Shown here one piece after another: positions 23,871 through 63,253 of a stretch of DNA of 64,000 nucleotides (position 1 is its first letter; every line of letters begins with the position of its first letter). A model generated the notes under the pieces. That model was not told where the DNA came from, did no database searches, and worked only from the letters and a program-made list of their open reading frames with translations. The DNA lies in the NCBI GenBank assembly GCA_004431415.1, contig QPMI01000657.1, positions 186,001 through 250,000 of the forward strand, read 5' to 3'. The stretch comes from Cyanophora paradoxa CCMP329 (lineage: Eukaryota; Plantae; Glaucophyta). Both the position numbers and the translations under genes were made by a program.

Positions 23871-23879
23871 CGGCTCCGG

Positions 23880-38764: not shown

Positions 38765-38797
38765 CTGTTCACGTGCCCGGGGCACGAGAGGGCGGTC

Positions 38798-38835
38798 CAC
38801 TGGGGCTTAAGAAAGTCTGTTTCCCGGGGGAAACA
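38798..38835 (+). repeat. Left TIR
   Basis: CACTGGGGCTTAAGAAAGTCTGTTTCCCGGGGGAAACA. Confidence 0.93.
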
Positions 38836-39732
38836 GTCACATGTTTCCCGGCTAGCCGGGAAACATGCGCCAGTTTCCCGGGAGGTGGGAAACAGAGCTG
38901 TAACCTGGTCGTGAGGCGAGTCAGCAGCGCGGGGACGCAGCGCTGTGCCACTGCGTACGCTGACCTTACCTACATAGCTGAGGATGGCGCCGCAAAGAGC
39001 CGATGGCCAGATTGGCCCGGTTGGCCGTTTGCTGCTGTGACCGGGTTCGTCAAGAAAACGAGCGCGCGCCACCAAAGCGCGCGGTTCAAAGTTGCTTACA
39101 GCTCATTTGGAGACGTTCTAGGCGGCTAAAACGTGTGCTTTGGGGTTGGCGTGGTCCGCCGATCAAATGTTGGGCAGAGCCCGGAACGCATCGGTGGCGC
39201 GCCATTCTGCTGCAGAAATGCTTTGATGTGATCGATAAAGCAAACTCGAGACCCGCGGCTCGCGCCGGAGAGCGATCTGTGTAACGTGCGGGTCGGGAAA
39301 CACCAGGTGGGAAACGCGGGCGAGTTGCATGGCTTGGCCAACCACGTCACTGGCGCTCGCTGGGAGTCCAGAACGACGCCTGTACATCGTCTGGTGCTTA
39401 GATGCAACGCTTAGATGGTTGAATAGCGCCGCTTTTCAACCTGTCTGGCTTGACGACGTCGTGCTGTGTTTCATATCGGACTCCTCCCCCCCCCTTTGAA
39501 GCTGTATCCCTGCTAGCCAGGAAACGTCTGCGCATGCAGCTTTTGCGGGGTTCTTTGAAGTTGCTGTTTCTCGTCCAGGATGCTATGATGCCTAAATGCG
39601 ATGCCGTTCACGTTGTGACTTGAATTCGGCCATGGCTGAGGTGCGACGTACCTTGCGCACATGCATTCGTTTCTTAGGGAAACATCTCGCACCCAATTCC
39701 AAAGCACCGCTAATGATGAATTCTTAGTTCCC

Positions 39733-42700
39733 AACGAGTGCTTAATTCGAAATGAATGATGCTACTGACCTTCGCCGTGCATGCACTCTGATCGGCCGCC
39801 TCACGGCTGGAATCACTGAATCAGAAACGACCCACTTATGCACGCCGCCATCGCCAGAGCCGACCGCCCGAGATGGCGATCATGATCACTCTAGATCAGC
39901 GAGGTGCGGCTCAGGCCGCAAACGAGCAGTTGCAGGAGTTGCAGCTACGATAATGCTAACCGGATTTAGGAAATGGGAGAGCCGCTCGCCCTCCCAGTGC
40001 AGTAGTAGCGACAGTGCGGCAAAGCCGTGATCATGAGTACTGAAAACTAGCTTCCAAGGCTCTCTGCGAGGTTGCCCGCTTTAAACGAGTGCTTAATTCG
40101 ACATGAATGATGCTACTGACCTTCGCCGTGCATGCACTCTGATCGGCCGCCTTACGGCTGGAATCACTGAATCAGCAACGACGTCGACCCATGCCGCCAT
40201 CGCCAGAGCCGACCGCCCGAGATGGCGATCACTCTAGATCAGCGAGGTGCGGCTCAGGCCGCAAACGAGCAGTTGCAGGAGTTGCAGCTACGATAATGCT
40301 AACCGGATTTAGGAAATGGGAGAGCCGCTCGCCCTCCCGGTGCAGTAGTAGCGACAGTGCGGCAAAGCCGTGATCATGAGTACTGAAAACTAGCTTCTCA
40401 GGCTCTCTGCGAGGTTGCCCGCTTTAAACGAGTGCTTAATTCGAAATGAATGATGCTACTGACCTTCGCCGTGCATGCACTCTGATCGGCCGCCTCACGG
40501 CTGGAATCACTGAATCAGAAACGACCCACTTATAATTATGCACGCCGCCATCGCCAGAGCCGACCGCCCGAGATGGCGATCACTCTAGATCAGCGATGTG
40601 CGGCTCAGGCCGCAAACGAGCAGTTGCAGGAGTTGCAGCTACGATAATGCTAACCGGATTTGGGAAATGGGAGAGCCGCTCGCCCTCCCGGTGCAATAGT
40701 AGCGACAGTGCGGCAAAGCCGTGATCATGAGTACTGAAAACTAGCTTCCAAGGCTCTCTGCGAGGTTGCCCGCTTTAAACGAGTGCTTAATTCGACATGA
40801 ATGATGCTACTGACCTTTGCCGTGCATGCACTCTGATCGGCCGCCTCACGGCTGGAATCACTGAATCAGCAACGACGTCGACCCACGCCGCCATCGCCAG
40901 AGCCGACCGCCCGAGATGGCGATCACTCTAGATCAGCGAGGTGCGGCTCAGGCCGCAAACGAGCAGTTGCAGGAGTTGCAGCTACGATAATGCTAACCGG
41001 ATTTGGGAAATGGGAGAGCCGCTCGCCCTCCCGGTGCAATAGTAGCGACAGTGCGGCAAAGCCGTGATCATGAGTACTGAAAACTAGCTTCCAAGGCTCT
41101 CTGCGAGGTTGCCCGCTTTAAACGAGTGCTTAATTCGACATGAATGATGCTACTGACCTTCGCCGTGCATGCACTCTGATCGGCCGCCTTACGGCTGGAA
41201 TCACTGAATCAGAAACGACCCACTTATGCACGCCGCCATCGCCAGAGCCGACCGCCCGAGATGGCGATCATGATCACTCTAGATCAGCGAGGTGCGGCTC
41301 AGGCCGCAAACGAGCAGTTGCAGGAGTTGCAGCTACGATAATGCTAACCGGATTTAGGAAATGGGAGAGCCGCTCGCCCTCCCGGTGCAGTAGTAGGGAC
41401 AGTGCGGCAAAGCCGTGATCATGAGTACTGAAAACTAGCTTCCAAGGCTCTCTGCGAGGTTGCCCGCTTTAAACGAGTGCTTAATTCGAAATGAATGATG
41501 CTACTGACCTTCGCCGTGCATGCACTCTGATCGGCCGCCTCACGGCTGGAATCTCTGAATCAGCAACGACGTCGACCCACGCCGCCATCGCCAGAGCCGA
41601 CCGCCCGAGATGGCGATCACTCTAGATCAGCGAGGTGCGGCTCAGGCCGCAAACGAGCAGTTGCAGGAGTTGCAGCTACGATAATGCTAACCGGATTTGG
41701 GAAATGGGAGAGCCGCTCGCCCTCCCGGTGCAATAGTAGCGACAGTGCGGCAAAGCCGTGATCATGAGTACTGAAAACTAGCTTCCAAGGCTCTCTGCGA
41801 GGTTGCCCGCTTTAAAAGAGTGCTTAATTCGAAATGAATGATGCTACTGACCTTCGCCGTGCATGCACTCTGATCGGCCGCCTCACGGCTGGAATCACTG
41901 AATCAGCAACGACGTCGACCCACGCCGCCATCGCCAGAGCCGACCGCCCGAGATGGCGATCACTCTAGATCAGCGAGGTGCGGCTCAGGCCGCAAACGAG
42001 CAGTTGCAGGAGTTGCAGCTACGATAATGCTAACCGGATTTGGGAAATGGGAGAGCCGCTCGCCCTCCCGGTGCAATAGTAGCGACAGTGCGGCAAAGCC
42101 GTGATCATGAGTACTGAAAACTAGCTTCCAAGGCTCTCTGCGAGGTTGCCCGCTTTAAACGAGTGCTTAATTCGAAATGAATGATGCTACTGACCTTCGC
42201 CGTGCATGCACTCTGATCGGCCGCCTCACGGCTGGAATCACTGAATCAGAAACGACCCACTTATGCACGCCGCCATCGCCAGAGCCGACCGCCCGAGATG
42301 GCGATCACTCTAGATCAGCGAGGTGCGGCTCAGGCCGCAAACGAGCAGTTGCAGGAGTTGCAGCTACGATAATGCTAACCGGATTTAGGAAATGGGAGAG
42401 CCGCTCGCCCTCCGGTGCAATAGTAGCGACAGTGCGGCAAAGCCGCGATCATGAGTACTGAAAACTAGCTTCCAAGGCTCTCTGCGAGGTTGCCCGCTTT
42501 AAACGAGTGCTTAATTCGAAATGAATGATGCTACTGACCTTCGCCGTGCATGCACTCTGATCGGCCGCCTCACGGCTGGAATCACTGAATCAGAAACGAC
42601 CCACTTATGCACGCCGCCATCGCCAGAGCCGACCGCCCGAGATGGCGATCACTCTAGATCAGCGATGTGCGGCTCAGGCCGCAAACGAGCAGTTGCAGGA

Positions 42701-45700
42701 GTTGCAGCTACGATAATGCTAACCGGATTTGGGAAATGGGAGAGCCGCTCGCCCTCCCGGTGCAATAGTAGCGACAGTGCGGCAAAGCCGTGATCATGAG
42801 TACTGAAAACTAGCTTCCAAGGCTCTCTGCGAGGTTGCCCGCTTTAAACGAGTGCTTAATTCGAAATGAATGATGCTACTGACCTTCGCCGTGCATGCAC
42901 TCTGATCGGCCGCCTCACGGCTGGAATCACTGAATCAGAAACGACCCACTTATGCACGCCGCCATCGCCAGAGCCGACCGCCCGAGATGGCGATCACTCT
43001 AGATCAGCGAGGTGCGGCTCAGGCCGCAAACGAGCAGTTGCAGGAGTTGCAGCTACGATAATGCTAACCGGATTTAGGAAATGGGAGAGCCGCTCGCCCT
43101 CCCGGTGCAATAGTAGCGACAGTGCGGCAAAGCCGCGATCATGAGTACTGAAAACTAGCTTCCAAGGCTCTCTGCGAGGTTGCCCGCTTTAAACGAGTGC
43201 TTAATTCGAAATGAATGATGCTACTGACCTTCGCCGTGCATGCACTCTGATCGGCCGCCTCACGGCTGGAATCACTGAATCAGAAACGACCCACTTATGC
43301 ACGCCGCCATCGCCAGAGCCGACCGCCCGAGATGGCGATCACTCTAGATCAGCGAGGTGCGGCTCAGGCCGCAAACGAGCAGTTGCAGGAGTTGCAGCTA
43401 CGATAATGCTAACCGGATTTAGGAAATGGGAGAGCCGCTCGCCCTCCCGGTGCAGTAGTAGCGACAGTGCGGCAAAGCCGCGATCATGAGTACTGAAAAC
43501 TAGCTTCCAAGGCTCTCTGCGAGGTTGCCCGCTTTAAACGAGTGCTTAATTCGAAATGAATGATGCTACTGACCTTCGCCGTGCATGCACTCTGATCGGC
43601 CGCCTCACGGCTGGAATCACTGAATCAGAAACGACCCACTTATGCACGCCGCCATCGCCAGAGCCGACCGCCCGAGATGGCGATCACTCTAGATCAGCGA
43701 GGTGCGGCTCAGGCCGCAAACGAGCAGTTGCAGGAGTTGCAGCTACGATAATGCTAACCGGATTTAGGAAATGGAGAGCCGCTCGCCCTCCGGTGCAATA
43801 GTAGCGACAGTGCGGCAAAGCCGTGATCATGAGTACTGAAAACTAGCTTCCAAGGCTCTCTGCGAGGTTGCCCGCTTTAAACGAGTGCTTAATTCGAAAT
43901 GAATGATGCTACTGACCTTCGCCGTGCATGCACTCTGATCGGCCGCCTCACGGCTGGAATCACTGAATCAGAAACGACCCACTTATGCACGCCGCCATCG
44001 CCAGAGCCGACCGCCCGAGATGGCGATCACTCTAGATCAGCGAGGTGCGGCTCAGGCCGCAAACGCGCAGTTGCAGGAGTTGCAGCTACGATAATGCTAA
44101 CCGGATTTAGGAAATGGGAGAGCCGCTCGCCCTCCCGGTGCAGTAGTAGCGACAGTGCGGCAAAGCCGTGATCATGAGTACTGAAAACTAGCTTCCAAGG
44201 CTCTCTGCGAGGTTGCCCGCTTTAAACGAGTGCTTAATTCGAAATGAATGATGCTACTGACCTTCGCCGTGCATGCACTCTGATCGGCCGCCTCACGGCT
44301 GGAATCACTGAATCAGAAACGACCCACTTATGCACGCCGCCATCGCCAGAGCCGACCGCCCGAGATGGCGATCACTCTAGATCAGCGAGGTGCGGCTCAG
44401 GCCGCAAACGAGCAGTTGCAGGAGTTGCAGCTACGATAATGCTAACCGGATTTAGGAAATGGGAGAGCCGCTCGCCCTCCCGGTGCAGTAGTAGCGACAG
44501 TGCGGCAAAGCCGTGATCATGAGTACTGAAAACTAGCTTCCAAGGCTCTCTGCGAGGTTGCCCGCTTTAAACGAGTGCTTAATTCGAAATGAATGATGCT
44601 ACTGACCTTCGCCGTGCATGCACTCTGATCGGCCGCCTCACGGCTGGAATCACTGAATCAGAAACGACCCACTTATGCACGCCGCCATCGCCAGAGCCGA
44701 CCGCCCGAGATGGCGATCACTCTAGATCAGCGAGGTGCGGCTCAGGCCGCAAACGAGCAGTTGCAGGAGTTGCAGCTACGATAATGCTAACCGGATTTAG
44801 GAAATGGGAGAGCCGCTCGCCCTCCCGGTGCAGTAGTAGTGACAGTGCGGCAAAGCCGTGATCATGAGTACTGAAAACTAGCTTCCAAGGCTCTCTGCGA
44901 GGTTGCCCGCTTTAAACGAGTGCTTAATTCGAAATGAATGATGCTACTGACCTTCGCCGTGCATGCACTCTGATCGGCCGCCTCACGGCTGGAATCACTG
45001 AATCAGAAACGACCCACTTATGCACGCCGCCATCGCCAGAGCCGACCGCCCGAGATGGCGATCACTCTAGATCAGCGAGGTGCGGCTCAGGCCGCAAACG
45101 AGCAGTTGCAGGAGTTGCAGCTACGATAATGCTAACCGGATTTGGGAAATGGAGAGCCGCTCGCCCTCCGGTGCAGTAGTAGCGACAGTGCGGCAAAGCC
45201 GCGATCATGAGTACTGAAAACTAGCTTCCAAGGCTCTCTGCGAGGTTGCCCGCTTTAAACGAGTGCTTAATTCGAAATGAATGATGCTACTGACCTTCGC
45301 CGTGCATGCACTCTGATCGGCCGCCTCACGGCTGGAATCACTGAATCAGAAACGACCCACTTATGCACGCCGCCATCGCCAGAGCCGACCGCCCGAGATG
45401 GCGATCACTCTAGATCAGCGAGGTGCGGCTCAGGCCGCAAACGAGCAGTTGCAGGAGTTGCAGCTACGATAATGCTAACCGGATTTAGGAAATGGGAGAG
45501 CCGCTCGCCCTCCCGGTGCAGTAGTAGCGACAGTGCGGCAAAGCCGCGATCATGAGTACTGAAAACTAGCTTCCAAGGCTCTCTGCGAGGTTGCCCGCTT
45601 TAAACGAGTGCTTAATTCGAAATGAATGATGCTACTGACCTTCGCCGTGCATGCACTCTGATCGGCCGCCTCACGGCTGGAATCACTGAATCAGAAACGA

Positions 45701-48700
45701 CCCACTTATGCACGCCGCCATCGCCAGAGCCGACCGCCCGAGATGGCGATCACTCTAGATCAGCGAGGTGCGGCTCAGGCCGCAAACGAGCAGTTGCAGG
45801 AGTTGCAGCTACGATAATGCTAACCGGATTTGGGAAATGGAGAGCCGCTCGCCTCCCGGTGCAATAGTAGCGACAGTGCGGCAAAGCCGTGATCATGAGT
45901 ACTGAAAACTAGCTTCCAAGGCTCTCTGCGAGGTTGCCCGCTTTAAACGAGTGCTTAATTCGAAATGAATGATGCTACTGACCTTCGCCGTGCATGCACT
46001 CTGATCGGCCGCCTCACGGCTGGAATCACTGAATCAGAAACGACCCACTTATGCACGCCGCCATCGCCAGAGCCGACCGCCCGAGATGGCGATCACTCTA
46101 GATCAGCGAGGTGCGGCTCAGGCCGCAAACGCGCAGTTGCAGGAGTTGCAGCTACGATAATGCAAACCGGATTTAGGAAATGGGAGAGCCGCTCGCCCTC
46201 CGGTGCAGTAGTAGCGACAGTGCGGCAAAGCCGTGATCATGAGTACTGAAAACTAGCTTCCAAGGCTCTCTGCGAGGTTGCCCGCTTTAAACGAGTGCTT
46301 AATTCGAAATGAATGATGCTACTGACCTTCGCCGTGCATGCACTCTGATCGGCCGCCTCACGGCTGGAATCACTGAATCAGAAACGACCCACTTATGCAC
46401 GCCGCCATCGCCAGAGCCGACCGCCCGAGATGGCGATCACTCTAGATCAGCGAGGTGCGGCTCAGGCCGCAAACGAGCAGTTGCAGGAGTTGCAGCTACG
46501 ATAATGCTAACCGGATTTAGGAAATGGGAGAGCCGCTCGCCCTCCCGGTGCAATAGTAGCGACAGTGCGGCAAAGCCGTGATCATGAGTACTGAAAACTA
46601 GCTTCCAAGGCTCTCTGCGAGGTTGCCCGCTTTAAACGAGTGCTTAATTCGAAATGAATGATGCTACTGACCTTCGCCGTGCATGCACTCTGATCGGCCG
46701 CCTCACGGCTGGAATCACTGAATCAGAAACGACCCACTTATGCACGCCGCCATCGCCAGAGCCGACCGCCCGAGATGGCGATCACTCTAGATCAGCGAGG
46801 TGCGGCTCAGGCCGCAAACGCGCAGTTGCAGGAGTTGCAGCTACGATAATGCAAACCGGATTTAGGAAATGGGAGAGCCGCTCGCCCTCCCGGTGCAGTA
46901 GTAGCGACAGTGCGGCAAAGCCGTGATCATGAGTACTGAAAACTAGCTTCCAAGGCTCTCTGCGAGGTTGCCCGCTTTAAACGAGTGCTTAATTCGAAAT
47001 GAATGATGCTACTGACCTTCGCCGTGCATGCACTCTGATCGGCCGCCTCACGGCTGGAATCACTGAATCAGAAACGACCCACTTATGCACGCCGCCATCG
47101 CCAGAGCCGACCGCCCGAGATGGCGATCACTCTAGATCAGCGAGGTGCGGCTCAGGCCGCAAACGAGCAGTTGCAGGAGTTGCAGCTACGATAATGCTAA
47201 CCGGATTTGGGAAATGGGAGAGCCGCTCGCCCTCCCGGTGCAGTAGTAGTGACAGTGCGGCAAAGCCGTGATCATGAGTACTGAAAACTAGCTTCCAAGG
47301 CTCTCTGCGAGGTTGCCCGCTTTAAACGAGTGCTTAATTCGAAATGAATGATGCTACTGACCTTCGCCGTGCATGCACTCTGATCGGTCGCCTCACGGCT
47401 GGAATCACTGAATCAGAAACGACCCACTTATGCACGCCGCCATCGCCAGAGCCGACCGCCCGAGATGGCGATCACTCTAGATCAGCGAGGTGCGGCTCAG
47501 GCCGCAAACGCGCAGTTGCAGGAGTTGCAGCTACGATAATGCAAACCGGATTTAGGAAATGGGAGAGCCGCTCGCCCTCCCGGTGCAGTAGTAGCGACAG
47601 TGCGGCAAAGCCGTGATCATGAGTACTGAAAACTAGCTTCCAAGGCTCTCTGCGAGGTTGCCCGCTTTAAACGAGTGCTTAATTCGAAATGAATGATGCT
47701 ACTGACCTTCGCCGTGCATGCACTCTGATCGGCCGCCTCACGGCTGGAATTACTGAATCAGAAACGACCCACTTATGCACGCCGCCATCGCCAGAGCCGA
47801 CCGCCCGAGATGGCGATCACTCTAGATCAGCGAGGTGCGGCTCAGGCCGCAAACGAGCAGTTGCAGGAGTTGCAGCTACGATAATGCTAACCGGATTTAG
47901 GAAATGGGAGAGCCGCTCGCGCTCCCGGTGCAGTAGTAGCGACAGTGCGGCAAAGCCGTGATCATGAGTACTGAAAACTAGCTTCCAAGGCTCTCTGCGA
48001 GGTTGCCCGCTTTAAACGAGTGCTTAATTCGAAATGAATGATGCTACTGACCTTCGCCGTGCATGCACTCTGATCGGCCGCCTCACGGCTGGAATCACTG
48101 AATCAGAAACGACCCACTTATGCACGCCGCCATCGCCAGAGCCGACCGCCCGAGATGGCGATCACTCTAGATCAGCGAGGTGCGGCTCAGGCCGCAAACG
48201 AGCAGTTGCAGGAGTTGCAGCTACGATAATGCTAACCGGATTTAGGAAATGGGAGAGCCGCTCGCCCTCCCGGTGCAGTAGTAGTGACAGTGCGGCAAAG
48301 CCGTGATCATGAGTACTGAAAACTAGCTTCCAAGGCTCTCTGCGAGGTTGCCCGCTTTAAACGAGTGCTTAATTCGAAATGAATGATGCTACTGACCTTC
48401 GCCGTGCATGCACTCTGATCGGCCGCCTCACGGCTGGAATCACTGAATCAGAAACGACCCACTTATGCACGCCGCCATCGCCAGAGCCGACCGCCCGAGA
48501 TGGCGATCACTCTAGATCAGCGAGGTGCGGCTCAGGCCGCAAACGAGCAGTTGCAGGAGTTGCAGCTACGATAATGCTAACCGGATTTGGGAAATGGGAG
48601 AGCCGCTCGCCCTCCCGGTGCAGTAGTAGTGACAGTGCGGCAAAGCCGTGATCATGAGTACTGAAAACTAGCTTCCAAGGCTCTCTGCGAGGTTGCCCGC

Positions 48701-51700
48701 TTTAAACGAGTGCTTAATTCGAAATGAATGATGCTACTGACCTTCGCCGTGCATGCACTCTGATCGGCCGCCTCACGGCTGGAATCACTGAATCAGAAAC
48801 GACCCACTTATGCACGCCGCCATCGCCAGAGCCGACCGCCCGAGATGGCGATCACTCTAGATCAGCGAGGTGCGGCTCAGGCCGCAAACGAGCAGTTGCA
48901 GGAGTTGCAGCTACGATAATGCTAACCGGATTTGGGAAATGGGAGAGCCGCTTGCCCTCCCGGTGCAATAGTAGCGACAGTGCGGCAAAGCCACGATCAT
49001 GAGTACTGAAAACTAGCTTCCAAGGCTCTCTGCGAGGTTGCCCGCTTTAAACGAGTGCTTAATTCGAAATGAATGATGCTACTGACCTTCGCCGTGCATG
49101 CACTCTGATCGGCCGCCTCACGGCTGGAATTACTGAATCAGCAACGACGTCGACCCACGTGCACGCCGCCATCGCCAGAGCCGACCGCCCGAGATGGCGA
49201 TCACTCTAGATCAGCGAGGTGCGGCTCAGGCCGCAAACGAGCAGTTGCAGGAGTTGCAGCTACGATAATGCTAACCGGATTTGGGAAATGGGAGAGCCGC
49301 TCGCCCTCCCGGTGCAGTAGTAGGGACAGTGCGGCAAAGCCGCGATCATGAGTACTGAAAACTAGCTTCCAAGGCTCTCTGCGAGGTTGCCCGCTTTAAA
49401 CGAGTGCTTAATTCGAAATGAATGATGCTACTGACCTTCGCCGTGCATGCACTCTGATCGGCCGCCTCACGGCTGGAATCACTGAATCAGAAACGACCCA
49501 CTTATGCACGCCGCCATCGCCAGAGCCGACCGCCCGAGATGGCGATCACTCTAGATCAGCGAGGTGCGGCTCAGGCCGCAAACGAGCAGTTGCAGGAGTT
49601 GCAGCTACGATAATGCTAACCGGATTTAGGAAATGGGAGAGCCGCTCGCCCTCCCGGTGCAGTAGTAGTGACAGTGCGGCAAAGCCGTGATCATGAGTAC
49701 TGAAAACTAGCTTCCAAGGCTCTCTGCGAGGTTGCCCGCTTTAAACGAGTGCTTAATTCGAAATGAATGATGCTACTGACCTTCGCCGTGCATGCACTCT
49801 GATCGGTCGCCTCACGGCTGGAATCACTGAATCAGAAACGACCCACTTATGCACGCCGCCATCGCCAGAGCCGACCGCCCGAGATGGCGATCACTCTAGA
49901 TCAGCGAGGTGCGGCTCAGGCCGCAAACGAGCAGTTGCAGGAGTTGCAGCTACGATAATGCTAACCGGATTTGGGAAATGGGAGAGCCGCTCGCCCTCCC
50001 GGTGCAATAGTAGCGACAGTGCGGCAAAGCCGCGATCATGAGTACTGAAAACTAGCTTCCAAGGCTCTCTGCGAGGTTGCCCGCTTTAAACGAGTGCTTA
50101 ATTCGAAATGAATGATGCTACTGACCTTCGCCGTGCATGCACTCTGATCGGTCGCCTCACGGCTGGAATCACTGAATCAGAAACGACCCACTTATGCACG
50201 CCGCCATCGCCAGAGCCGACCGCCCGAGATGGCGATCACTCTAGATCAGCGAGGTGCGGCTCAGGCCGCAAACGAGCAGTTGCAGGAGTTGCAGCTACGA
50301 TAATGCTAACCGGATTTGGGAAATGGGAGAGCCGCTCGCCTCCCGGTGCAATAGTAGCGACAGTGCGGCAAAGCCGCGATCATGAGTACTGAAAACTAGC
50401 TTCCAAGGCTCTCTGCGAGGTTGCCCGCTTTAAACGAGTGCTTAATTCGAAATGAATGATGCTACTGACCTTCGCCGTGCATGCACTCTGATCGGCCGCC
50501 TCACGGCTGGAATTACTGAATCAGCAACGACGTCGACCCACGTGCACGCCGCCATCGCCAGAGCCGACCGCCCGAGATGGCGATCACTCTAGATCAGCGA
50601 GGTGCGGCTCAGGCCGCAAACGAGCAGTTGCAGGAGTTGCAGCTACGATAATGCAAACCGGATTTGGGAAATGGGAGAGCCGCTCGCCCTCCCGGTGCAG
50701 TAGTAGCGACAGTGCGGCAAAGCCGTGATCATGAGTACTGAAAACTAGCTTCCAAGGCTCTCTGCGAGGTTGCCCGCTTTAAACGAGTGCTTAATTCGAA
50801 ATGAATGATGCTACTGACCTTCGCCGTGCATGCACTCTGATCGGCCGCCTCACGGCTGGAATCACTGAATCAGCATGCGCAACGACCCACGCCGCCATCG
50901 CCAGAGCCGACCGCCCGAGATGGCGATCACTCTAGATCAGCGAGGTGCGGCTCAGGCCGCAAACGAGCAGTTGCAGGAGTTGCAGCTACGATAATGCTAA
51001 CCGGATTTGGGAAATGGGAGAGCCGCTCGCCCTCCCGGTGCAATAGTAGCGACAGTGCGGCAAAGCCGCGATCATGAGTACTGAAAACTAGCTTCCAAGG
51101 CTCTCTGCGAGGTTGCCCGCTTTAAACGAGTGCTTAATTCGAAATGAATGATGCTACTGACCTTCGCCGTGCATGCACTCTGATCGGCCGCCTCACGGCT
51201 GGAATTACTGAATCAGCAACGACGTCGACCCACTTATGCACGCCGCCATCGCCAGAGCCGACCGCCCGAGATGGCGATCATGATCACTCTAGATCAGCGA
51301 GGTGCGGCTCAGGCCGCAAACGAGCAGTTGCAGGAGTTGCAGCTACGATAATGCTAACCGGATTTAGGAAATGGGAGAGCCGCTCGCCCTCCCAGTGCAG
51401 TAGTAGCGACAGTGCGGCAAAGCCGTGATCATGAGTACTGAAAACTAGCTTCCAAGGCTCTCTGCGAGGTTGCCCGCTTTAAACGAGTGCTTAATTCGAC
51501 ATGAATGATGCTACTGACCTTCGCCGTGCATGCACTCTGATCGGTCGCCTCACGGCTGGAATCACTGAATCAGAAACGACCCACTTATGCACGCCGCCAT
51601 CGCCAGAGCCGACCGCCCGAGATGGCGATCACTCTAGATCAGCGAGGTGCGGCTCAGGCCGCAAACGAGCAGTTGCAGGAGTTGCAGCTACGATAATGCT

Positions 51701-54700
51701 AACCGGATTTGGGAAATGGGAGAGCCGCTCGCCCTCCCGGTGCAATAGTAGCGACAGTGCGGCAAAGCCGCGATCATGAGTACTGAAAACTAGCTTCCAA
51801 GGCTCTCTGCGAGGTTGCCCGCTTTAAACGAGTGCTTAATTCGAAATGAATGATGCTACTGACCTTCGCCGTGCATGCACTCTGATCGGCCGCCTCACGG
51901 CTGGAATTACTGAATCAGCAACGACGTCGACCCACGTGCACGCCGCCATCGCCAGAGCCGACCGCCCGAGATGGCGATCACTCTAGATCAGCGAGGTGCG
52001 GCTCAGGCCGCAAACGAGCAGTTGCAGGAGTTGCAGCTACGATAATGCAAACCGGATTTGGGAAATGGGAGAGCCGCTCGCCCTCCCGGTGCAGTAGTAG
52101 CGACAGTGCGGCAAAGCCGTGATCATGAGTACTGAAAACTAGCTTCCAAGGCTCTCTGCGAGGTTGCCCGCTTTAAACGAGTGCTTAATTCGAAATGAAT
52201 GATGCTACTGACCTTCGCCGTGCATGCACTCTGATCGGCCGCCTCACGGCTGGAATCACTGAATCAGCATGCGCAACGACCCACGCCGCCATCGCCAGAG
52301 CCGACCGCCCGAGATGGCGATCACTCTAGATCAGCGAGGTGCGGCTCAGGCCGCAAACGAGCAGTTGCAGGAGTTGCAGCTACGATAATGCTAACCGGAT
52401 TTGGGAAATGGGAGAGCCGCTCGCCCTCCCGGTGCAATAGTAGCGACAGTGCGGCAAAGCCGCGATCATGAGTACTGAAAACTAGCTTCCAAGGCTCTCT
52501 GCGAGGTTGCCCGCTTTAAACGAGTGCTTAATTCGAAATGAATGATGCTACTGACCTTCGCCGTGCATGCACTCTGATCGGCCGCCTCACGGCTGGAATT
52601 ACTGAATCAGCAACGACGTCGACCCACGTGCACGCCGCCATCGCCAGAGCCGACCGCCCGAGATGGCGATCACTCTAGATCAGCGAGGTGCGGCTCAGGC
52701 CGCAAACGAGCAGTTGCAGGAGTTGCAGCTACGATAATGCTAACCGGATTTGGGAAATGGGAGAGCCGCTCGCCCTCCCGGTGCAGTAGTAGCGACAGTG
52801 CGGCAAAGCCGCGATCATGAGTACTGAAAACTAGCTTCCAAGGCTCTCTGCGAGGTTGCCCGCTTTAAACGAGTGCTTAATTCGAAATGAATGATGCTAC
52901 TGACCTTCGCCGTGCATGCACTCTGATCGGCCGCCTCACGGCTGGAATCACTGAATCAGAAACGACCCACTTATGCACGCCGCCATCGCCAGAGCCGACC
53001 GCCCGAGATGGCGATCACTCTAGATCAGCGAGGTGCGGCTCAGGCCGCAAACGAGCAGTTGCAGGAGTTGCAGCTACGATAATGCTAACCGGATTTAGGA
53101 AATGGGAGAGCCGCTCGCCCTCCCGGTGCAGTAGTAGTGACAGTGCGGCAAAGCCGTGATCATGAGTACTGAAAACTAGCTTCCAAGGCTCTCTGCGAGG
53201 TTGCCCGCTTTAAACGAGTGCTTAATTCGAAATGAATGATGCTACTGACCTTCGCCGTGCATGCACTCTGATCGGTCGCCTCACGGCTGGAATCACTGAA
53301 TCAGAAACGACCCACTTATGCACGCCGCCATCGCCAGAGCCGACCGCCCGAGATGGCGATCACTCTAGATCAGCGAGGTGCGGCTCAGGCCGCAAACGAG
53401 CAGTTGCAGGAGTTGCAGCTACGATAATGCTAACCGGATTTGGGAAATGGGAGAGCCGCTCGCCCTCCCGGTGCAATAGTAGCGACAGTGCGGCAAAGCC
53501 GCGATCATGAGTACTGAAAACTAGCTTCCAAGGCTCTCTGCGAGGTTGCCCGCTTTAAACGAGTGCTTAATTCGAAATGAATGATGCTACTGACCTTCGC
53601 CGTGCATGCACTCTGATCGGCCGCCTCACGGCTGGAATTCGAATTACTGAATCAGCAACGACGTCGACCCACGTGCACGCCGCCATCGCCAGAGCCGACC
53701 GCCCGAGATGGCGATCACTCTAGATCAGCGAGGTGCGGCTCAGGCCGCAAACGAGCAGTTGCAGGAGTTGCAGCTACGATAATGCAAACCGGATTTGGGA
53801 AATGGGAGAGCCGCTCGCCCTCCCGGTGCAGTAGTAGCGACAGTGCGGCAAAGCCGTGATCATGAGTACTGAAAACTAGCTTCCAAGGCTCTCTGCGAGG
53901 TTGCCCGCTTTAAACGAGTGCTTAATTCGAAATGAATGATGCTACTGACCTTCGCCGTGCATGCACTCTGATCGGCCGCCTCACGGCTGGAATCACTGAA
54001 TCAGCATGCGCAACGACCCACGCCGCCATCGCCAGAGCCGACCGCCCGAGATGGCGATCACTCTAGATCAGCGAGGTGCGGCTCAGGCCGCAAACGAGCA
54101 GTTGCAGGAGTTGCAGCTACGATAATGCTAACCGGATTTGGGAAATGGGAGAGCCGCTCGCCCTCCCGGTGCAATAGTAGCGACAGTGCGGCAAAGCCGC
54201 GATCATGAGTACTGAAAACTAGCTTCCAAGGCTCTCTGCGAGGTTGCCCGCTTTAAACGAGTGCTTAATTCGAAATGAATGATGCTACTGACCTTCGCCG
54301 TGCATGCACTCTGATCGGCCGCCTCACGGCTGGAATTACTGAATCAGCAACGACGTCGACCCACGTGCACGCCGCCATCGCCAGAGCCGACCGCCCGAGA
54401 TGGCGATCACTCTAGATCAGCGAGGTGCGGCTCAGGCCGCAAACGAGCAGTTGCAGGAGTTGCAGCTACGATAATGCTAACCGGATTTGGGAAATGGGAG
54501 AGCCGCTCGCCCTCCGGTGCAGTAGTAGCGACAGTGCGGCAAAGCCGTGATCATGAGTACTGAAAACTAGCTTCCAAGGCTCTCTGCGAGGTTGCCCGCT
54601 TTAAACGAGTGCTTAATTCGAAATGAATGATGCTACTGACCTTCGCCGTGCATGCACTCTGATCGGCCGCCTCACGGCTGGAATCACTGAATCAGCATGC

Positions 54701-54994
54701 GCAACGACCCACGCCGCCATCGCCAGAGCCGACCGCCCGAGATGGCGATCACTCTAGATCAGCGAGGTGCGGCTCAGGCCGCAAACGAGCAGTTGCAGGA
54801 GTTGCAGCTACGATAATGCTAACCGGATTTAGGAAATGGGAGAGCCGCTCGCCCTCCCGGTGCAGTAGTAGCGACAGTGCGGCAAAGCCGTGATCATGAG
54901 TACTGAGAGCTCGCCCTCCCGGTGCAGTAGTAGCGACAGTGCGGCAAAGCTGTGATCATGAGTACTGAAAACTAGCTTTCAAGGCTCTCTGCAA
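39733..54994 (+). repeat. Satellite array, 44 units of ~345 bp
   Basis: 44 occurrences of ATGAATGATGCTACTGACC counted from 39752 to 54623, spaced 343-357 bp apart; units are nearly identical. Confidence 0.98.
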
Positions 54995-55351
54995 GGAAGT
55001 CTTCTGCGAGAAAGTCTAGCCGACCGCCAGAGCCATAATTATAAGAGCCGGAGTCTTTTGGCGGGTCGGATTATATCAAAATAGATGGTAGTCGCTCGCT
55101 CATGAGCATCGCCGGTCAACTTTGCTCATGGCTTCCCAGCCACTGAGCCCTAGGGCCGCTTCAACTGTTCCTGAAATCACCTACCAGGTTCTGGAATGCT
55201 ACAGCTAGTTGTTCATGTCGTGCACGTGTCGAGCCGTTCATGATCAGCACCTACCAGGGTCTGGAAAGCTACAGCTAGTTGTCGCGTCGAGCTGGTGTTT
55301 TAGCTGTAGGCCTCCAGGGCTGCTGCGAGGTTGCACAGATCCGCCCTATAA

Positions 55352-58300
55352 TTAGCTGGCGCCAGTAATAACGGTAACTGAATGCATTATGGACGAACCA
55401 GCATTGAAATCAATTGGGAATATATATCGATGCAATGATGACTTTTCGGCAGCAGGCTGCACAGAAACTCCAAGAGGTGGGACATTTGGAGGGACTGCAA
55501 AGAGAAACCCTGTGTTGACGTTGCAAAACACTCATTCAAAATATACGTGGAAAGCCTTGTACCTGCATGAGACAGCTGATCTGTGCGCTCAGAGCCTCTA
55601 GATGTGGAAGCCCTTAAGCTTCGAATTCGCTCGGCAGCGGGATGGCTGTTCATGATGTGTCGAATCTTGTCTCGAATTAATTCTGACGCTGCATGAAGGT
55701 CTTGAAAGAATCTTGGATTGGCTTTTCGCATCCTGCACACTGCGAATAGTGAATAGGCGTGTGTGAATTCAATTTTGCGAAATTATAACAATATAACTAC
55801 TGACGTTCTTCGAGCAGCCATGAAGTTTGAAGAAGTGCGAAACGATAAGGCTGAGTTGTGACAGCATCTGTGAAGACTCTAATAAGTGTATGCAGTTGCT
55901 TTTAGAAACGACTCTTATAAGTATATGCAATTGCTTTAGAGCGGCTCCATACCTACATAATCGTTTTGTGCGAAATGCTTGGCAGAGACTTCGAAAGTGC
56001 GATACCAGGGATCTTCTCCACTTGGCATTTGCTTCACCTGAGTAACAATCGCATATGAATGTGCAATATATGCATGTAATAATTACGCACAAGAATGAAT
56101 GATGGAATCAACATCTTTCCCGTAATCACACCGTGGACGTAGACGTGGTCACGATTGGCTGCAGCGCTCACGAACTGCTCGAATGCGAAATTCGATTTTG
56201 CCGTTCTGCAGGCGGCTGGCCATTGCATGCGATAAGCTTGCATGCTCGAGCTCGCATTATACGCATATGCCGACACACACCCGTATTCGATTCATCGAAG
56301 ACAAGGGCTATGCCGAACTCCAGGCAGATTGCCGATAGCTGCAGAAAGTAGTCCAGCGACATATAACGTATTCCTTCGTAGGGATCCATTTGGATCGCCT
56401 CGCAGATGATGACCTATTTCCACGCTAGTCACGCTTGAATTTCACAAACAGGACTATAAGACATGCATGCGCATGCAGATACGTACGTATACACGAGCAT
56501 ACCTTGATGGGCAGCTTCGAAAAAGGATGCGACTTTGTCAGCTCTTCTTGAGTGATCTCTGCACTTTCTTGCTTGCGACCTTGAATCATCTGTATATATT
56601 TATATCGGAAGCAAGGCATCCCCCGGCCTGGCATCAGGCGATCATCTCTGCATCTTAAGCTTGCAAAGTTTCAAACCGTGCGAAGTTCTCGAATAGCGTT
56701 TTGAACCGCCGCTGCTTTTGGTTCTGGTCGTTGCTTACTTGGATGTTCATTCTCGTAGATGCAAGGGATGACGACGTATTTTTCCCTTGGGATAGTACAA
56801 TCAGCGGCTCTAAATTTTCGTATGCACATAAATTAAAAAGAGACAGTTGGCAGACCTTCCCATAATTGCACTAGCAGGCATGGGCTCTCGTTTGTTGGTC
56901 GCGTTTGGTACATTTGTTCCGAGAGCGCCTCTTGATGTTCCGTAGCATCCTTTTGCCCAGACATACGTCCCCATTTTGCACTTGGGATTTGAGTGCAGGC
57001 TCGCGATCTATTTGAAGTTTAGTCGTCTCAAAATTTGACAAATAGGAAGAAAAGAGCACCAGGCATGCAATCTCATTGATCACCGATTCCAAGTCAGATG
57101 AGCTGCCAGCGTTTGCACGCATCAACAATTTGAAGCCCTCTGACAACGTGTTGAGGTAGCCATCAATCGTTTTCCTCAAAGCTTCAATTTTCTCTGCGTC
57201 ACGTACACATCACTGAACTGTTGATTCAGCATCTAGCGTTTGAGAATTAATATACCCGTTGAGTAATACTGAAATTGTACATGTGTGCCGTCGACGTCGA
57301 CGTTAACGTTGTCATGCACCAATGAGGGCAAGGCCATTGGGTCTGACAAAGCATGCCGCATGAATCTGTAAAGGTTGAAGAACAAATTAGATACGGCAGA
57401 TATCGCGATCGATCATGGGATTGCAGCCGAGTATAAATCACTCACTTGCCGGTAAGATCATGGGTGACTTTCGGTTGTGAAAGTACGGATGCCATTGATG
57501 AGCCCCAAGCTCTGAAAAAATCTTGCTTGCCTGCATTGTAGGTGGATCTCAACTGTGGATCGTGATGCAGTCGACTCTGCAAAATTTCCACAGCCACTGC
57601 TGGTGCCACCAGGGACCAAGTGGAGTCGTTGGCCTCCGGATCTGGGCTGCAACTGGAACTAGTCCTCCAATCTTGAAGGGGATCCAGAAGCCCTGAAAGA
57701 TCGTCTGTGGATAGTTCAGCACATGCTCTGCGTATGCAAAAGAGGCTTAATCAGCGTTAACGTTGTTATGAAGTATAAAAAGAACATCCTCAGGCACCGA
57801 AACGCTTCGAGCGCTTCTTCAGGACTATGGAGCTGACTGAAGCTGAGAAACATGATGAGCACTTGGACGATAGGGCTCTTGAAATTATTTGCCAGCTGCA
57901 GATTCATTGCCCTGTCGACGTAAAATATATTAACAAGCGAATTTCAGAGCAATTGCGAGCATTGTACTGACTTCATGACGGCTGTGAAGATGCCCGTTAA
58001 TGCAGACAAGCATGGAAGATCCGACTTCAGGTTTCGAAGCAGTTCTGTTCGTTTCACGAATGAGGTCGCCGCGGCGCGGCCCTGTTGCGGGCCGCATTCG
58101 CAAAGAACGGGATCGCGCACGGCTAGCGCTGAGGGGCCTGGCAGCCTCGAAGGCGGCCGCCTTCCGCTTTGCAGCTGCACCGGACTCTGTGATTTTCAAA
58201 CCGAGGGCGCGAGTTAGCTGCTAACCGGGCCGCACACGCAAGGAGCAGCTGCACGCACGGGTGCCTGGGGATGCGGGAGCACTGCTAGCGCTGGCGGCCG

Positions 58301-58729
58301 CCTTCCGCTTGGCAGCTGCCATCAATTGCAAGCTTTCAATTGCAAGCTTTCGCGTGCAGGGCGCCCCCGCGGCGCGCCTAGCGTGCCTGTGCCTTGCGGC
58401 GCGTGTTGCTATAGATGTTAGGGACTGCTCAGCACGGGCTGCAGCGCCACCGGCAGCTGTTCCGTTTTGTATGGCACATGCAAGGCGGCCGTTCTCGGAG
58501 CGAAATCGATTGCCGGGCGGTCTAGCGGGGCCGAATATCGCTTTTAGATGCTAGAGAGTGAAAGCGCACCTCCGGAGGCTTGGCAATCGATTCTGCTACC
58601 CGCTCTGGCCGCGGCGGCATTGGCGGTATGCTGGCGCTTCACGGCGGCGAGCTTGCCATGCCCTTTCTGATGCGATCGCTTTGGCTTCTCCTGGGCGTCC
58701 GCCGCGGTGACTTCGGGGGCGTCCTCCAT
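55352..58729 (-). CDS. Multi-exon divergent class-III PLP-dependent aminotransferase-like protein with a basic low-complexity N-terminus (transposon cargo)
   Basis: Spliced exons give colinear class-III motifs: ANAGSSSDLESVI, YVWAKGCYGTSRGAL, VIICEAIQ...DYFLQLSAICLEFGIALVFDESNT|AACRTAKSNFAFEQF...VITGKML, IRDKIRHIMNSHP, AGFLFAV, LHRYIFPIDF, then TAA at 55354-55352. Start codon and some exon edges are tentative. Confidence 0.75.
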
Positions 58730-59293
58730 TGCCGCTCGGCGTTGCCAAGTTGCTCAGCGTTCCTTTCAAGTTTGCTCGAGCTCTAGATCTAGATCTCCGC
58801 TGCTGCTTGTCCTCTTAAAAGAGCGATTCCCCTCTAGATCTCCGCGTTTGATCTCCTCTAGCTTCACGGCGCCGCTTGCCCCCCCCTCCAGAAAGCGTAC
58901 CCCCAAAAGTTTTGGGAACGGCCGTCCTCGTTCAAAAAAGCGAGCAGCTCTGCCTACCGAACAGCTCAGCGACTGCTGCCGAATGAAGATCATTGCCGAT
59001 CGGAATGCAAACCATTTGAGGGCGAGGAGAGGTCAGGTTTGTGTGGCTGTTCGTGCTCCAGGTGCGCTCCCGCTCATCACAGCTGCACGCTTGCAATAGG
59101 CTGTTTCCTTAGTTGCGCAAAAGCGATAGCAATTGGTTCGCAGCTGCTCATCCGCCCCAGCCGCGGCCGCAGGCTGCAGCTGCTCATGGCCATGGAATGG
59201 ATCGATGGCGCCGCGCGCGCCGGCAAGCGCGACCTTCAACGAAGGTGCGCATCCCCTTGGTTGCAACTTCTCATCATTTCCCGCCTGCTCATA

Positions 59294-61352
59294 GCCGCGC
59301 CTCGCAGAGTGATCGCTTTCTCGGGGGGTTGGCTCTGGCGGGCTGTTTCTGACCCGAGTGCTGGGGCGTCGCTCCGGCCGATCCGAGTGCATGGCGAAGG
59401 TCAGTTCCATCATTCATTTCGATATTTGCACTCGTCTCAATCGTGCGACCTTGCAGGCATCTTGGGAGCTTCGCTTTCGGCACTCTCGGCGTGGCCGCGC
59501 CGCACCTGGTGGGCAGGCGCGGCGCTCTCGCTTCGTAATAAAGGTGAGTATACGTATACGTATCGCTGCTGCTGCAACTTCTAATCGTTTCGGGCCTGAC
59601 CCGCGCCTCGCAGAGTGATCGCTTTCTAAGGGGGTTGGCTCTGGCGGGCTGTTTCTGACCCGAGTGCTGGGGCATCGCTCCGGCCGATCCGAGTGCATGG
59701 CGAAGGTCAGTTCCATCATTCATTTCGATATTTGCACTCGTCTCAATCGTGCGACCTCGCAGGCATCTTGGGAGCTTCGCTTTCGGCACTCTCGGCGTGG
59801 CCGCGCCGCAGCTGGTGGGCGGGCGGCGCTCTCGCTTCGTAATAAAGGTGAGTATACGTATACGTATCGCTGCTGCTGCAACTTCTTATCGTTTCGGGCC
59901 TGACCCGCGCCTCGCAGAGTGATCGCTTTCTAAGGGGGTTGGCTCTGGCGGGCTGTTTCTGACCCGAGTGCTGGGGCGTCGCTCCGGCCGATCCGAGTGC
60001 ATGGCGAAGGTCAGTTCCATCATTCATTTCGATATTTGCACTCGTCTCAATCGTGCGACCTCGCAGGCATCTTGGGAGCTTCGCTTTCGGCACTCTCGGC
60101 GTGGCCGCGCCGCAGCTGGTGGGCGGGCGGCGCTCTCGCTTCGTAATAAAGGTGAGTATACGTATACGTATCGCTGCTGCTGCAACTTCTAATGGTTTCG
60201 GGCCTGACCCGCGCCTCGCAGAGTGATCGCTTTCTAAGGGGGTTGGCTCTGGCGGGCTGTTTCTGACCCGAGTGCTGGGGCGTCGCTCCGGCCGATCCGA
60301 GTGCATGGCGAAGGTCAGTTCCATCATTCATTTCGATATTTGTGCTCGTCTCAATCGTGCGACCTCGCAGGCATCTTGGGAGCTTCGCTTTCGGCACTCT
60401 CGGCGTGGCCGCGCCGCAGCTGGTGGGCGGGCGGCGCTCTCGCTTCGTAATAAAGGTGAGTATCGCTGCTGCTGCAACTTCTTATCGTTTCGGGCCTGAC
60501 CCGCGCCTCGCAGAGTGATCGCTTTCTAAGGGGGTTGGCTCTGGCGGGCTGTTTCTGACCCGAGTGCTGGGGCGTCGCTCCGGCCGATCCGAGTGCATGG
60601 CGAAGGTCAGTTCCATCATTCATTTCGATATTTGCACTCGTCTCAATCGTGCGACCTCGCAGGCATCTTGGGAGCTTCGCTTTCGGCACTCTCGGCGTGG
60701 CCGCGCCGCAGCTGGTGGGCGGGCGGCGCTCTCGCTTCGTAATAAAGGTGAGTATACGTATACGTATCGCTGCTGCTGCAACTTCCAATCGTTTCCGCCC
60801 TGAGCTACGCCTCGCAGAGTGATCGCTTTCTCGGGGGGATGGCTCTGGCGGGCTGTTTCTGACCCGAGTGCTGGGGCGTCGCTCCGGCCGATCCGAGTGC
60901 ATGGCGAAGGTCAGTTCCATCATTCATTTCGATATTTGTGCTCGTCTCAATCGTGCGACCTCGCAGGCATCTTGGGAGCTTCGCTTTCGGCACTCTCGGC
61001 GTGGCCGCGCCGCAGCTGGTGGGCGGGCGGCGCTCTTGCTTCGTAATAAAGGTGAGTATACGTATACGTATCGCTGCTGCTGCAACTTCTTATCGTTTCG
61101 GGCCTGACCCGCGCCTCGCAGAGTGATCGCTTTCTCGGGGGGATGGCTCTGGCGGGCTGTTTCTGACCCGAGTGCTGGGGCGTCGCTCCGGTCGATCCGA
61201 GTGCATGGCGAAGGTCAGTTCCATCATTCATTTCGATATTTGCACTCGTCTCAATCGTGCGACCTCGCAGGCATCTTGGGAGCTTCGCTTTCGGCACTCT
61301 CGGCGTGGCCGTGCCGCAGCTGGAGGGCAGGCGCGGCGCTCGTACTTCGTAA
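59294..61352 (-). repeat. Second satellite array, 7 units of ~304 bp, an inverted diverged homologue of the 345-bp unit
   Basis: Unit spacing 306, 304, 304, 292, 304, 304. The reverse complement shares blocks ACGAGTGC, TCGAAATGAATGATG, ACTGACCTTCGCC, GATCGGCCG, CGCCAGAGCC, GCGATCACTCT and CTGCGAGGT, in the same order as the left array. Confidence 0.95.
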
Positions 61353-63048
61353 ATTAAAGAAGGCGAGTATCTCCGTAGCACTATCAATATAGCTAACAAA
61401 GATGGCTATTGGTTAAAGCGCTATCGTTAGTGTACATGTATTAATTTTAGCGATAGGCGAGCACTACCAGCGATTTTAATGCGTTAGTACTAGTGTTTTA
61501 ATCATGGTTCACCGATCGCGAGTCACGGTTTCTTTTTTGCAAAAGTGGACCGTCGGACGTCGCATTGATACACCACGGCACATGTATCAATGTTCTACGT
61601 GACGTGCCCTTCCGACCGGTCATCGATATCTATCTAGCCGAAGGTGCTAGCTAGGTGCCGGTCATGGGTCACCGAGTCACGGTTTCAGACGTCAACGTGT
61701 CACGTTTTCAGACGTCAATGTTGAATTCTTAAAGATAATGCCAGGATCTAGACTCGTTGAGTTCTATAGCCCCGCAGCCCCTCATGATCAACGACTGCTA
61801 ATAGGCTTCATCTTTGCATGTCCCCTGGTCTGCGCAGATCAAGCCTAGATCGTGGCTGTATCCGTAGCACTCTAGATCTTTATAAACCGTTGAACTGACT
61901 TGCAAATACGCTCGCAGTGCTTTTCTCCGGGCGGCGCCTCAACTGAACGGTCCTAGGCCTCGGACAAGGTGATTCATTCATGATTTGCAGCTGCACTAGC
62001 TATACCTATAGTACTAGATCTAGATTTGCAGCTGTACTATCATATATAGTACGGATCTGGCGTTATATAATTAGATGAAATAGCTATAGGCAATCTCTAT
62101 TTTGAAATTCGAATTCAACCGCCGATCGAGAATCGAGATCCGTTGGTAACATTTGCATTCTATCGTTGCTATATGTATCAATATTAATGCTATCATTCTA
62201 GATACAGATTAGAGAGCCGGCGCAAGCGCTAGCTATGCAGATCTACCTCCTGCTGCAGTCCACTGATGATACGGCTTCCTTTTCCACAGGTCAGCTCTAC
62301 ATCCGCTCTGTATGTGTTCAGGTCCGAGTGCGAGCTCGCTCTAGATCTGCAATATACGTTTATATATATACATGATTATTAAAACTGATTGCGGTATGGC
62401 TTTGTACGAATGTATACACGCAGTTTTCTTCTACTGGCCTCCGCCAGCTGCAGCCGCCCGGTCAATATCATGATCATGAGGTGCTTTGAACTTGCAATTG
62501 CTATCATAGCAAGCTGCACTAGTAATATAGCTAATTATTGCTCGCATGCGCAGCGTTGGCATGCGTATGGCACGCGGTCATGAGTCATGATCATGATCCG
62601 CTGCAGCTGCAGCTGCAGCTGCGCGCAGCAAGCTTAAGTACTGAGTAGGAGATCTAGAGCAGCGCTATAGCTAGCTATATACATTGCTCGCCTTGCAGCG
62701 TTAGCACAGCACGCGTACGTATACGATGCAGCCCAGCAAGCAGAAGATCATCGGATCCCGGCCTAGCTAGCTCGGATCTTAGCTAGCTAGCTCGCTAGGA
62801 TCTTAGCTAGCTCGCTAGGATCTTAGCTAGCTCGTTAGCTTGAGTTGTACATGTGTATAAAGAGTACAGCGTTAACGTTGCGCATGTTTGGCGATGTAAA
62901 AACCAGCTAGATGGGTCGGGTAATGGGCAAACGAAAAAAAAGTTACCCGGTGGGAAACTCAGCGATGTTTCCCACCTGACGTTTCCCACCTGATGGTCCC
63001 CATGGGGGTCCTCCGCCCCGGTGTGTTACCTATAGGGTAACATGCATG

Positions 63049-63086
63049 TGTTTCCCCCGGGAAACATACTTTCTTAGGCACCAGTG
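63049..63086 (-). repeat. Right TIR
   Basis: Reverse complement reads CACTGGTGCCTAAGAAAGTATGTTTCCCGGGGGAAACA. Confidence 0.93.
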
Positions 63087-63141
63087 GTCAGCCTCACCGG
63101 CTCACCGAGTCAAAGGGGCGGGGGCGGGGAGGGGGGGGTAC

Positions 63142-63215: not shown

Positions 63216-63253
63216 CTGCGCGTGCCCCGCCCCCGTGAGGAGAAGGCGGCGGA

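Follow-up and report, generated by a model that had tools for sequence, protein, structure and literature searches.

A 24-kb CACTA-type element of the glaucophyte Cyanophora paradoxa with an aminotransferase-like gene between two inverted satellite arrays

Introduction

How does a transposable element (TE) without a recognizable transposase come to hold a complete enzyme-like gene between two inverted satellite arrays? The question is raised by a locus of Cyanophora paradoxa CCMP329 (contig QPMI01000657.1, positions 186,001 to 250,000; this stretch of 64,000 nucleotides is called the window, and all coordinates refer to it). The alga is GC-rich and its genes are dense in introns. The element, at 38798–63086, is assigned to the non-autonomous CACTA (En/Spm) type by its ends, its target-site duplication (TSD), its subterminal motifs and its dispersal. 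We consider it probable that its only gene is an old, resident accessory gene of this non-autonomous CACTA, the substrate of the encoded protein being left open. To our knowledge, eukaryotic DNA transposons have rarely kept whole metabolic-type enzymes under selection. The tiny and very divergent class III aminotransferase-like family to which the gene appears to belong (three sequences, at least one of them in an active CACTA-type element) is a concrete candidate for a new accessory function. Recently active giant CACTAs are also now documented in a glaucophyte; a published repeat survey of this lineage does not mention CACTA (PMC6704402).

The element and its insertion site

The element and its site comprise the following features.

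38798–63086: CACTA-type element, 24 kb, ends CACTG...CAGTG
38795–38797: left TSD, GTC, at the left flank
63087–63089: right TSD, GTC, at the right flank
38798–38834, + strand: left terminal inverted repeat (TIR), 37 bp, begins with CACTG, 34/37 against the right TIR
63050–63086, − strand: right TIR, closes with CAGTG, 34/37 against the left TIR
38819–39683: left subterminal GGGAAAC motifs in both orientations, starting at 38819, 38828, 38843, 38858, 38873, 38887, 39295, 39309 and 39677
62952–63065: right subterminal GGGAAAC motifs, starting at 62952, 62967, 62981, 63050 and 63059
38765–63141, − strand: host intron with the element inside, GT–AG, within an ATP-grasp/D-Ala-D-Ala-ligase-like gene

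The pairing of the two TIRs stands well apart from the runner-up 37-mer in the 64-kb window, which matches at 22 of 37 positions. There are eight GGGAAAC (or GTTTCCC) motifs within 600 bp of the left end of the element and five within 200 bp of its right end (13–25 per kb), against none in its 23-kb interior and three in the 38.8 kb outside it. Published criteria for CACTA elements are CACTA/G...C/TAGTG ends, TIRs mostly shorter than 50 bp, a 3-bp TSD and subterminal motifs in direct and inverted orientation, and non-autonomous members of more than 20 kb are possible (PMC10741241, PMC8978399). When the element and one copy of the TSD are excised in silico, an 85-nt GT–AG intron is left and the flanking host exons are in frame; the mean intron of C. 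paradoxa is 86 nt (PMC6704402). Since removal of the duplication restores the host intron in this way, the insertion is genuine; it is clean and recent, and the element has cut-and-paste anatomy. An earlier annotation made from the sequence of the window (hereafter the first-pass annotation) had already claimed a real insertion into a clean host intron, and had described the TIRs, the GGGAAAC motifs, two arrays, one spliced minus-strand gene and a perfect 3-bp TSD; every part of this anatomy was recovered on re-measurement.

The host gene (36700–38790 and 63142–63240, − strand) contains an ATP-grasp/D-Ala-D-Ala-ligase-like domain, followed by an apparent SET-like stretch that was seen by eye and has no Pfam match. 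RNA contigs match an approximately 90%-alike paralogue of this gene and not the interrupted copy.

A search of 92 stop-free frames of at least 45 aa, covering both arms, the central part and a single unit per array, gave no transposase family by Pfam, and Aminotran_3 was the sole relevant match. The aminotransferase-like gene is the only spliced gene of the element, which encodes neither of the usual En/Spm proteins (TnpD/TNP2 and TnpA/TNP1) in these frames; the absence of a transposase noted in the first-pass annotation thus holds in a profile search.

The terminus of the element is also found elsewhere in the genome. In two DNA runs contig depth rises exactly at the left TIR (51–68 to 280–1000 in the first run, 29 to about 200–520 in the second), which places the left arm at about seven to nine times the flank in both, contig depth not being equal to copy number. 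Contigs nearly identical to the left arm account for 2–3.5 times the flank depth and a variant diverged by about 7% for 5–6 times, which on a rough reading corresponds to about eight copies in two subfamilies. In each run at least four contigs have a different sequence ahead of the 38797/38798 boundary, and at most one of these is the element's own right flank. There is consequently a dispersed family that shares this terminus; the existence of further members, which the first-pass annotation had left to be checked, is borne out by the other flanks and by the 7%-diverged subfamily. Beyond about 39390 the depth is only about three times that of the flank, and one contig departs at 39374. This fall before the array indicates that most copies with the same terminus probably have a different interior. 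No empty site was present among the contigs listed at the left junction, and a scan of Joint Genome Institute (JGI) metagenomes with the TIR pattern returned no matches. Mobilization in trans, as proposed in the first-pass annotation, is the natural reading because the element has En/Spm-type ends, no transposase of its own and other copies with the same terminus.

Two inverted satellite arrays

Tandem arrays make up 17 kb of the element.

39733–54996, + strand: 345-bp tandem array, about 44 units (Tandem Repeats Finder, 43.9 × 345 bp at 39733–54906, 97% matches; partial unit to 54996)
59262–61352, − strand: 304-bp tandem array, about seven units (Tandem Repeats Finder, 6.8 × 304 bp at 59295–61352, 96% matches)
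61353–62950: right arm, non-coding, 47% GC, rich in nine-mers of the form X-rc(X)-X (X being a 3-mer)

Units of the larger array have a mean pairwise identity of 98% and length variants of 343–357 bp. At its outer end (39733–41474) units of 351 and 343 bp alternate, at its inner end (50435–54906) there is a roughly three-unit pattern and its middle is uniform; the patterns at the two ends are incipient higher-order repeats. In the smaller array the units are 97.5% alike among themselves. The two consensus units lie in opposite orientation and share conserved blocks, with 228 of 294 aligned columns identical (78%) and an alignment score of 203 compared with −57 ± 13 for shuffles. An identity of 78% between the arrays and of 97–98% within each shows that the inversion is old and that homogenization has been recent and separate in each array. 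The arrays were also considered as RNA genes or coding repeats, and this was dropped because all checks on the units were blank: no Rfam family matched, no tRNA was found, folding was no better than for shuffles (z = 0.42) and no open frame runs through the units.

The symmetry is limited to the arrays. Beyond the 52 terminal bases, the left and right arms between TIR and array are no more similar than shuffled sequence, and the same is true of the inner flanks of the arrays. The first-pass annotation had described a gene caged between inverted arrays within a foldback-like element. One gene does lie between inverted arrays, but the cage is asymmetric and its arms are unrelated. In the strict sense the element is not foldback-like: the shuffle-level similarity of the arms rules out foldback symmetry, the arrays are out of phase and 78% alike, and the TSD is 3 bp.

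We may wonder at this stage whether the interior is a unit at all, or whether chance nesting of unrelated pieces or a misassembly has brought together a small element with CACTG ends, satellites of independent origin and a gene that belongs to neither. The length of the array could be wrong; moreover, the majority of copies sharing this terminus appear to part from the element ahead of the array. Yet the TIRs, the perfect TSD and the in-frame 85-nt intron close exactly around this interior, and contigs from each of the two runs read through the left junction with no mismatch (the overlap being 29 letters only). In addition, the arrays are mutually homologous and the window has no further copy of either, and 20 DNA runs contain 93–98% of the words of the element interior. 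We regard such a composite as very improbable.

The gene between the arrays

55352–58137, − strand: class III aminotransferase-like gene, 14 exons, 13 GT–AG introns of 46–89 nt, 633 codons
Exons 1–7, − strand: 58137–57972, 57911–57798, 57727–57446, 57365–57256, 57193–57060, 57007–56856, 56809–56677
Exons 8–14, − strand: 56589–56503, 56413–56281, 56215–56091, 56037–55953, 55867–55805, 55739–55563, 55494–55352
58570–58729, − strand: candidate first exon with an ATG at 58729, phase-compatible, giving 687 aa in total; without homology support

All 13 introns are GT–AG and the 1.9 kb of exons contain no internal stop. Homology searches were run exon by exon, the exons being joined just to count phases and stops. 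The layout of the 5′ exon (58570–58137) is tentative, and a stretch resembling a nuclear localization signal may lie out of frame.

In composition the gene stands apart from its surroundings. Its span has 47% GC (50% at third codon positions), compared with 71–75% for host exons. The encoded protein and its C. paradoxa homologue (see below) have GARP values of 0.26–0.30 and FYMINK values of 0.20–0.24, against 0.39–0.50 and 0.06–0.09, respectively, for three host F-box proteins.

These features bear on whether the gene has been captured, as in Pack-CACTA or Tpn1-type elements, in which case a host or horizontally acquired gene would be a decaying passenger and the arrays captured satellite DNA. 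Capture of genes and satellites by CACTAs is well documented (PMC8978399, PMC10741241). The exons contain six in-frame 6-bp insertions resembling excision footprints, which would fit relaxed selection; their depletion relative to introns is not significant (p = 0.15), and it was dropped as proof of selection. The lack of the gene in RNA runs also agrees with decay. Four probable RNA runs contained no words of the element interior; two of these were examined for the host gene's own sequence and lacked it as well, so that silence is unproven. Against capture, the gene is complete, with 14 exons and neither stop nor frameshift, rather than a set of fragments. No close host parent was found among 1.8 billion representatives in protein collections (the comparison covers these collections and not this genome's own gene set), in which the nearest relatives are about 35–50% identical. 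Its composition is unlike that of host genes, and this includes the C. paradoxa homologue. We hold capture to be unlikely, if the most serious of the alternatives. The low-GC make-up of all three family members, the lack of a close parent and the completeness of the gene point instead to an old element-borne gene and not to a recent Pack-type capture. The term 'cargo-carrying' used in the first-pass annotation is apt in that the element carries an intact gene, and less so in that this gene, with relatives at 35–50% identity, resembles an old element-borne gene and not a captured host gene.

A remote class III aminotransferase family

Only two relatives of the best exon were found among the representatives. 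The closest is C. paradoxa tig00020531_g10036, and the other is an open reading frame (ORF) on an 8.8-kb contig (L001) of metagenome ERR10034898 with 53% GC. The L001 homologue is spliced, and at least 11 exons of the element gene have counterparts in it in the same order (tblastx E = 3e-41), although the two are hardly similar at the DNA level. Ordered matches at the protein level only confirm the exon model and show long selection on the protein. No further relatives emerged when the C. paradoxa protein or the core alignment was used in word-indexed searches, and a protein-pattern scan of JGI metagenomes gave no matches.

Four motifs are invariant in all three homologues: NAGSxSDLE, GTSRG, LVFDE and VHGxxxGKxLxPSF. 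The VIxCE...LVFDE core matches class III pyridoxal phosphate (PLP) aminotransferases in Pfam, NCBIfam and the Protein Data Bank (PDB), with no clear subfamily. Pfam Aminotran_3 (PF00202) matches the element frames with E = 2.6e-4, below the cut-off (15.9 bits for one window exon and 18.5 bits for the C. paradoxa homologue, the cut-off being 30.5), and NCBIfam class III aminotransferase scores are far under theirs. Profile matches in the PDB (E = 6e-4 to 9e-3) are led by lysine ε-aminotransferase and γ-aminobutyric acid (GABA) aminotransferase and do not separate substrate classes. The ESM Atlas gave 0.91, with 30/30 hits to PF00202 and 147/256 shared features, which is the level of a distant relative. 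The first-pass label of 'aminotransferase-like' is thus sound if taken to mean that the gene appears, from these profiles, to be a remote class III relative. The similarly named 'Aminotransferase-like plant mobile domain' (PF10536) was weighed as an alternative, and Pfam gave no match to it.

The Asp of LVFDE, counterpart of the PLP-binding Asp of the family, is invariant in the three homologues and aligns with the DEVQ of solved enzymes. Judged by eye, NAGSxSDLE and GTSRG seem to occupy the positions of the phosphate-binding NSGSEA motif and of the ring-stacking YHG/FWG motif, respectively. The invariant GK follows the LVFDE Asp by 38–39 residues; in ornithine aminotransferase (OAT) the catalytic lysine comes about 29 residues after the Asp. 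By eye this GK resembles the catalytic GKAL of the family, but comes about ten residues late. We prefer an enzyme with an insertion over a pseudo-enzyme. For the approximately 280 additional residues at the N terminus no relatives are known, and no DNA-binding domain was found in them. Small profiles of three conserved exons, the GK exon included, retrieved no aminotransferase from the PDB, and Foldseek on the core-alignment model returned noise only.

Next to its homologue, head-to-head, L001 carries a spliced AWS-SET-postSET gene (254–5560, − strand; Pfam SET E = 1e-4, AWS E = 0.003), with an AT-hook-like stretch in the gene region at about 3900. A DOT1-like methyltransferase motif was seen by eye at about 3130–3400, where Pfam and the PDB are blank. 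Close to its end and downstream of the homologue, L001 has four GG(G)AA(A)C motifs within 400 bp (8385–8790), and these weakly resemble the subterminal motif of the element.

Origin and possible role of the gene

In the reading that we favour, the element would have entered the host intron recently through cut-and-paste transposition, the transposase being supplied by a partner element elsewhere in the genome; a TnpA-like protein from the same partner would bind the GGGAAAC motifs. The gene would be an accessory of long standing in a large CACTA lineage and would have stayed intact after the transposase was lost. Its product, nuclear or cytosolic, would have a class III PLP-enzyme fold with an extra N-terminal region; it most likely still binds PLP and would serve the element rather than host metabolism. 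A single ancestral unit of about 300 bp, copied long ago into the opposite orientation, would have given rise to both arrays, which would then have expanded and homogenized independently through unequal exchange. Rather than forming a hairpin, the arrays are most likely padding, either passive or made up of binding sites.

Several observations weigh against this. Family scores are all below cut-off, HMMER places the GK beyond the catalytic lysine of the Mycobacterium enzyme, which leaves the register of the lysine ambiguous, and AlphaFold failed both with a single homologue (pLDDT 32) and with the core alignment (pLDDT 43). L001 carries no TIR. The idea of an element-borne lineage draws on composition (three F-box proteins compared) and on one element, and the partner with the transposase is something that we infer. 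To these are added the absence of the gene from the RNA runs and the use of contig depth in judging copies.

A different role is suggested by Arabidopsis VANDAL elements, in which an anti-silencing accessory protein, VANC, is likewise found with internal tandem repeats (PMC5735166). VANDALs are Mutator-like and VANC binds DNA; the present element is of CACTA type. By analogy, the gene and arrays could form an anti-silencing module: a chromatin-acting PLP enzyme (one that transaminates, for example, a histone lysine ε-amine or a formylated base) or a pseudo-enzyme would be recruited to the arrays and sustain the activity of the element and of its partners. The sites targeted by VANC are arranged as tandem repeats, which vary among related TEs (PMC5735166), and both array units here have conserved blocks in common. 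The head-to-head AWS-SET gene of L001 with its AT-hook-like stretch and the lead of lysine ε- and GABA aminotransferases among PDB profiles would agree with such a role. Yet L001 is a single neighbourhood, the PDB matches fail to separate substrate classes, the N-terminal region has no detected DNA-binding domain and no expression was seen in the RNA runs. We judge this module to be quite unlikely. A broader version is slightly more doubtful still: giant CACTAs of glaucophytes would carry a chromatin-modifying toolkit, the class III PLP enzyme (with a SET methyltransferase in a related element) altering histone lysines or modified bases at the arrays and so evading silencing. If true, this would be the first effector with an aminotransferase fold to be encoded by a transposon, and its chromatin chemistry would be new; the AWS-SET neighbourhood of L001 is a lead in this direction.

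Comparison with known elements

The element resembles non-autonomous CACTA (En/Spm) elements such as dSpm, Tpn1 of morning glory, Tgm-Express and Pack-CACTA in its ends, short TIRs, 3-bp TSD, subterminal motifs and lack of a transposase. Those elements carry recognizable fragments of host genes, whereas here there is a whole gene of 14–15 exons with no close parent found, together with 17 kb of arrays. CACTAs of Triticeae named Caspar contain repeats of about 340 bp. In Chenopodium quinoa, the 16.5-kb CACTA Jozin holds an array of 32.5 × 171 bp (PMC8978399). A long array of units of hundreds of base pairs within CACTA ends is thus common to all three; Jozin and Caspar have one array near the 3′ end beside the transposase, while here two inverted homologous arrays flank a non-transposase gene.

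Giant CACTAs with extra accessory ORFs are also reported for another archaeplastid alga, Chondrus crispus, the En/Spm families of which measure 16–20 kb and have four or five ORFs, as cited in PMC6431247; in the account of this citing paper we found neither an aminotransferase-fold ORF nor inverted arrays. Foldback elements (FB-NOF, Tetris and Galileo of Drosophila; Tm1 of nematodes) contain tandem repeats inside long near-identical TIRs, with a TSD of 8–10 bp (PMC4079207, PMC3169594), and FB-NOF holds a non-transposase gene, according to a title cited in PMC4079207. They share with our element inverted blocks of tandem repeats on either side of a middle domain, and differ in their arms, arrays and TSD as described above. 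The protein, for its part, has the VIxCE...LVFDE core of PF00202 enzymes (GABA aminotransferase, lysine ε-aminotransferase, ArgD, BioA, OAT) and, unlike them, falls below all cut-offs, has about 280 additional N-terminal residues and a GK that comes about ten residues late.

Precedents therefore exist singly for internal satellites (PMC8978399), for En/Spm elements of 16–20 kb with several ORFs (as cited in PMC6431247) and for a non-transposase gene between inverted repeats (from the title cited in PMC4079207). No report of the combination, above all of an element that contains nothing but an intact class III aminotransferase-like gene, was found in the literature, which was incompletely covered. 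The first-pass remark that no element of such architecture had been described therefore stands for the combination, not for the satellites or for giant multi-ORF En/Spm elements.

Micro-insertions and other features of the window

Nine-mers of the form X-rc(X)-X number 34 in the right arm, compared with 0.4 expected. They are enriched 20- to 85-fold over shuffles at 61353–63086, 7400–8800, 55352–58137 and in the array units. Most insertion variants of the 345-bp unit have this form; three 6-bp insertions are listed for other left-arm copies, and every one of them has it too. Elements with a 3-bp TSD that excise through a hairpin are expected to leave just this footprint, and its abundance suggests repeated visits by such elements. 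Giant CACTAs are thereby linked to the frequent micro-insertions of this genome.

A Gypsy-type retroelement occupies 11596–30292, with direct repeats of 264 bp (11596–11859 and 30029–30292, 99.6% alike) and long gag, protease, reverse transcriptase/RNase H and integrase-like ORFs. A direct repeat of 700 bp (5017–5705 and 30402–31099, 94% alike) is followed at some distance, in each case, by an F-box/leucine-rich-repeat-like ORF (9500–10513 and 31668–32816), which is probably the result of a tandem gene duplication; a host F-box-like ORF matches C. paradoxa proteins only, at 41–46% identity. Finally, three to four units of 86 bp lie in a low-GC stretch at 35034–35451, possibly the end of another mobile element.

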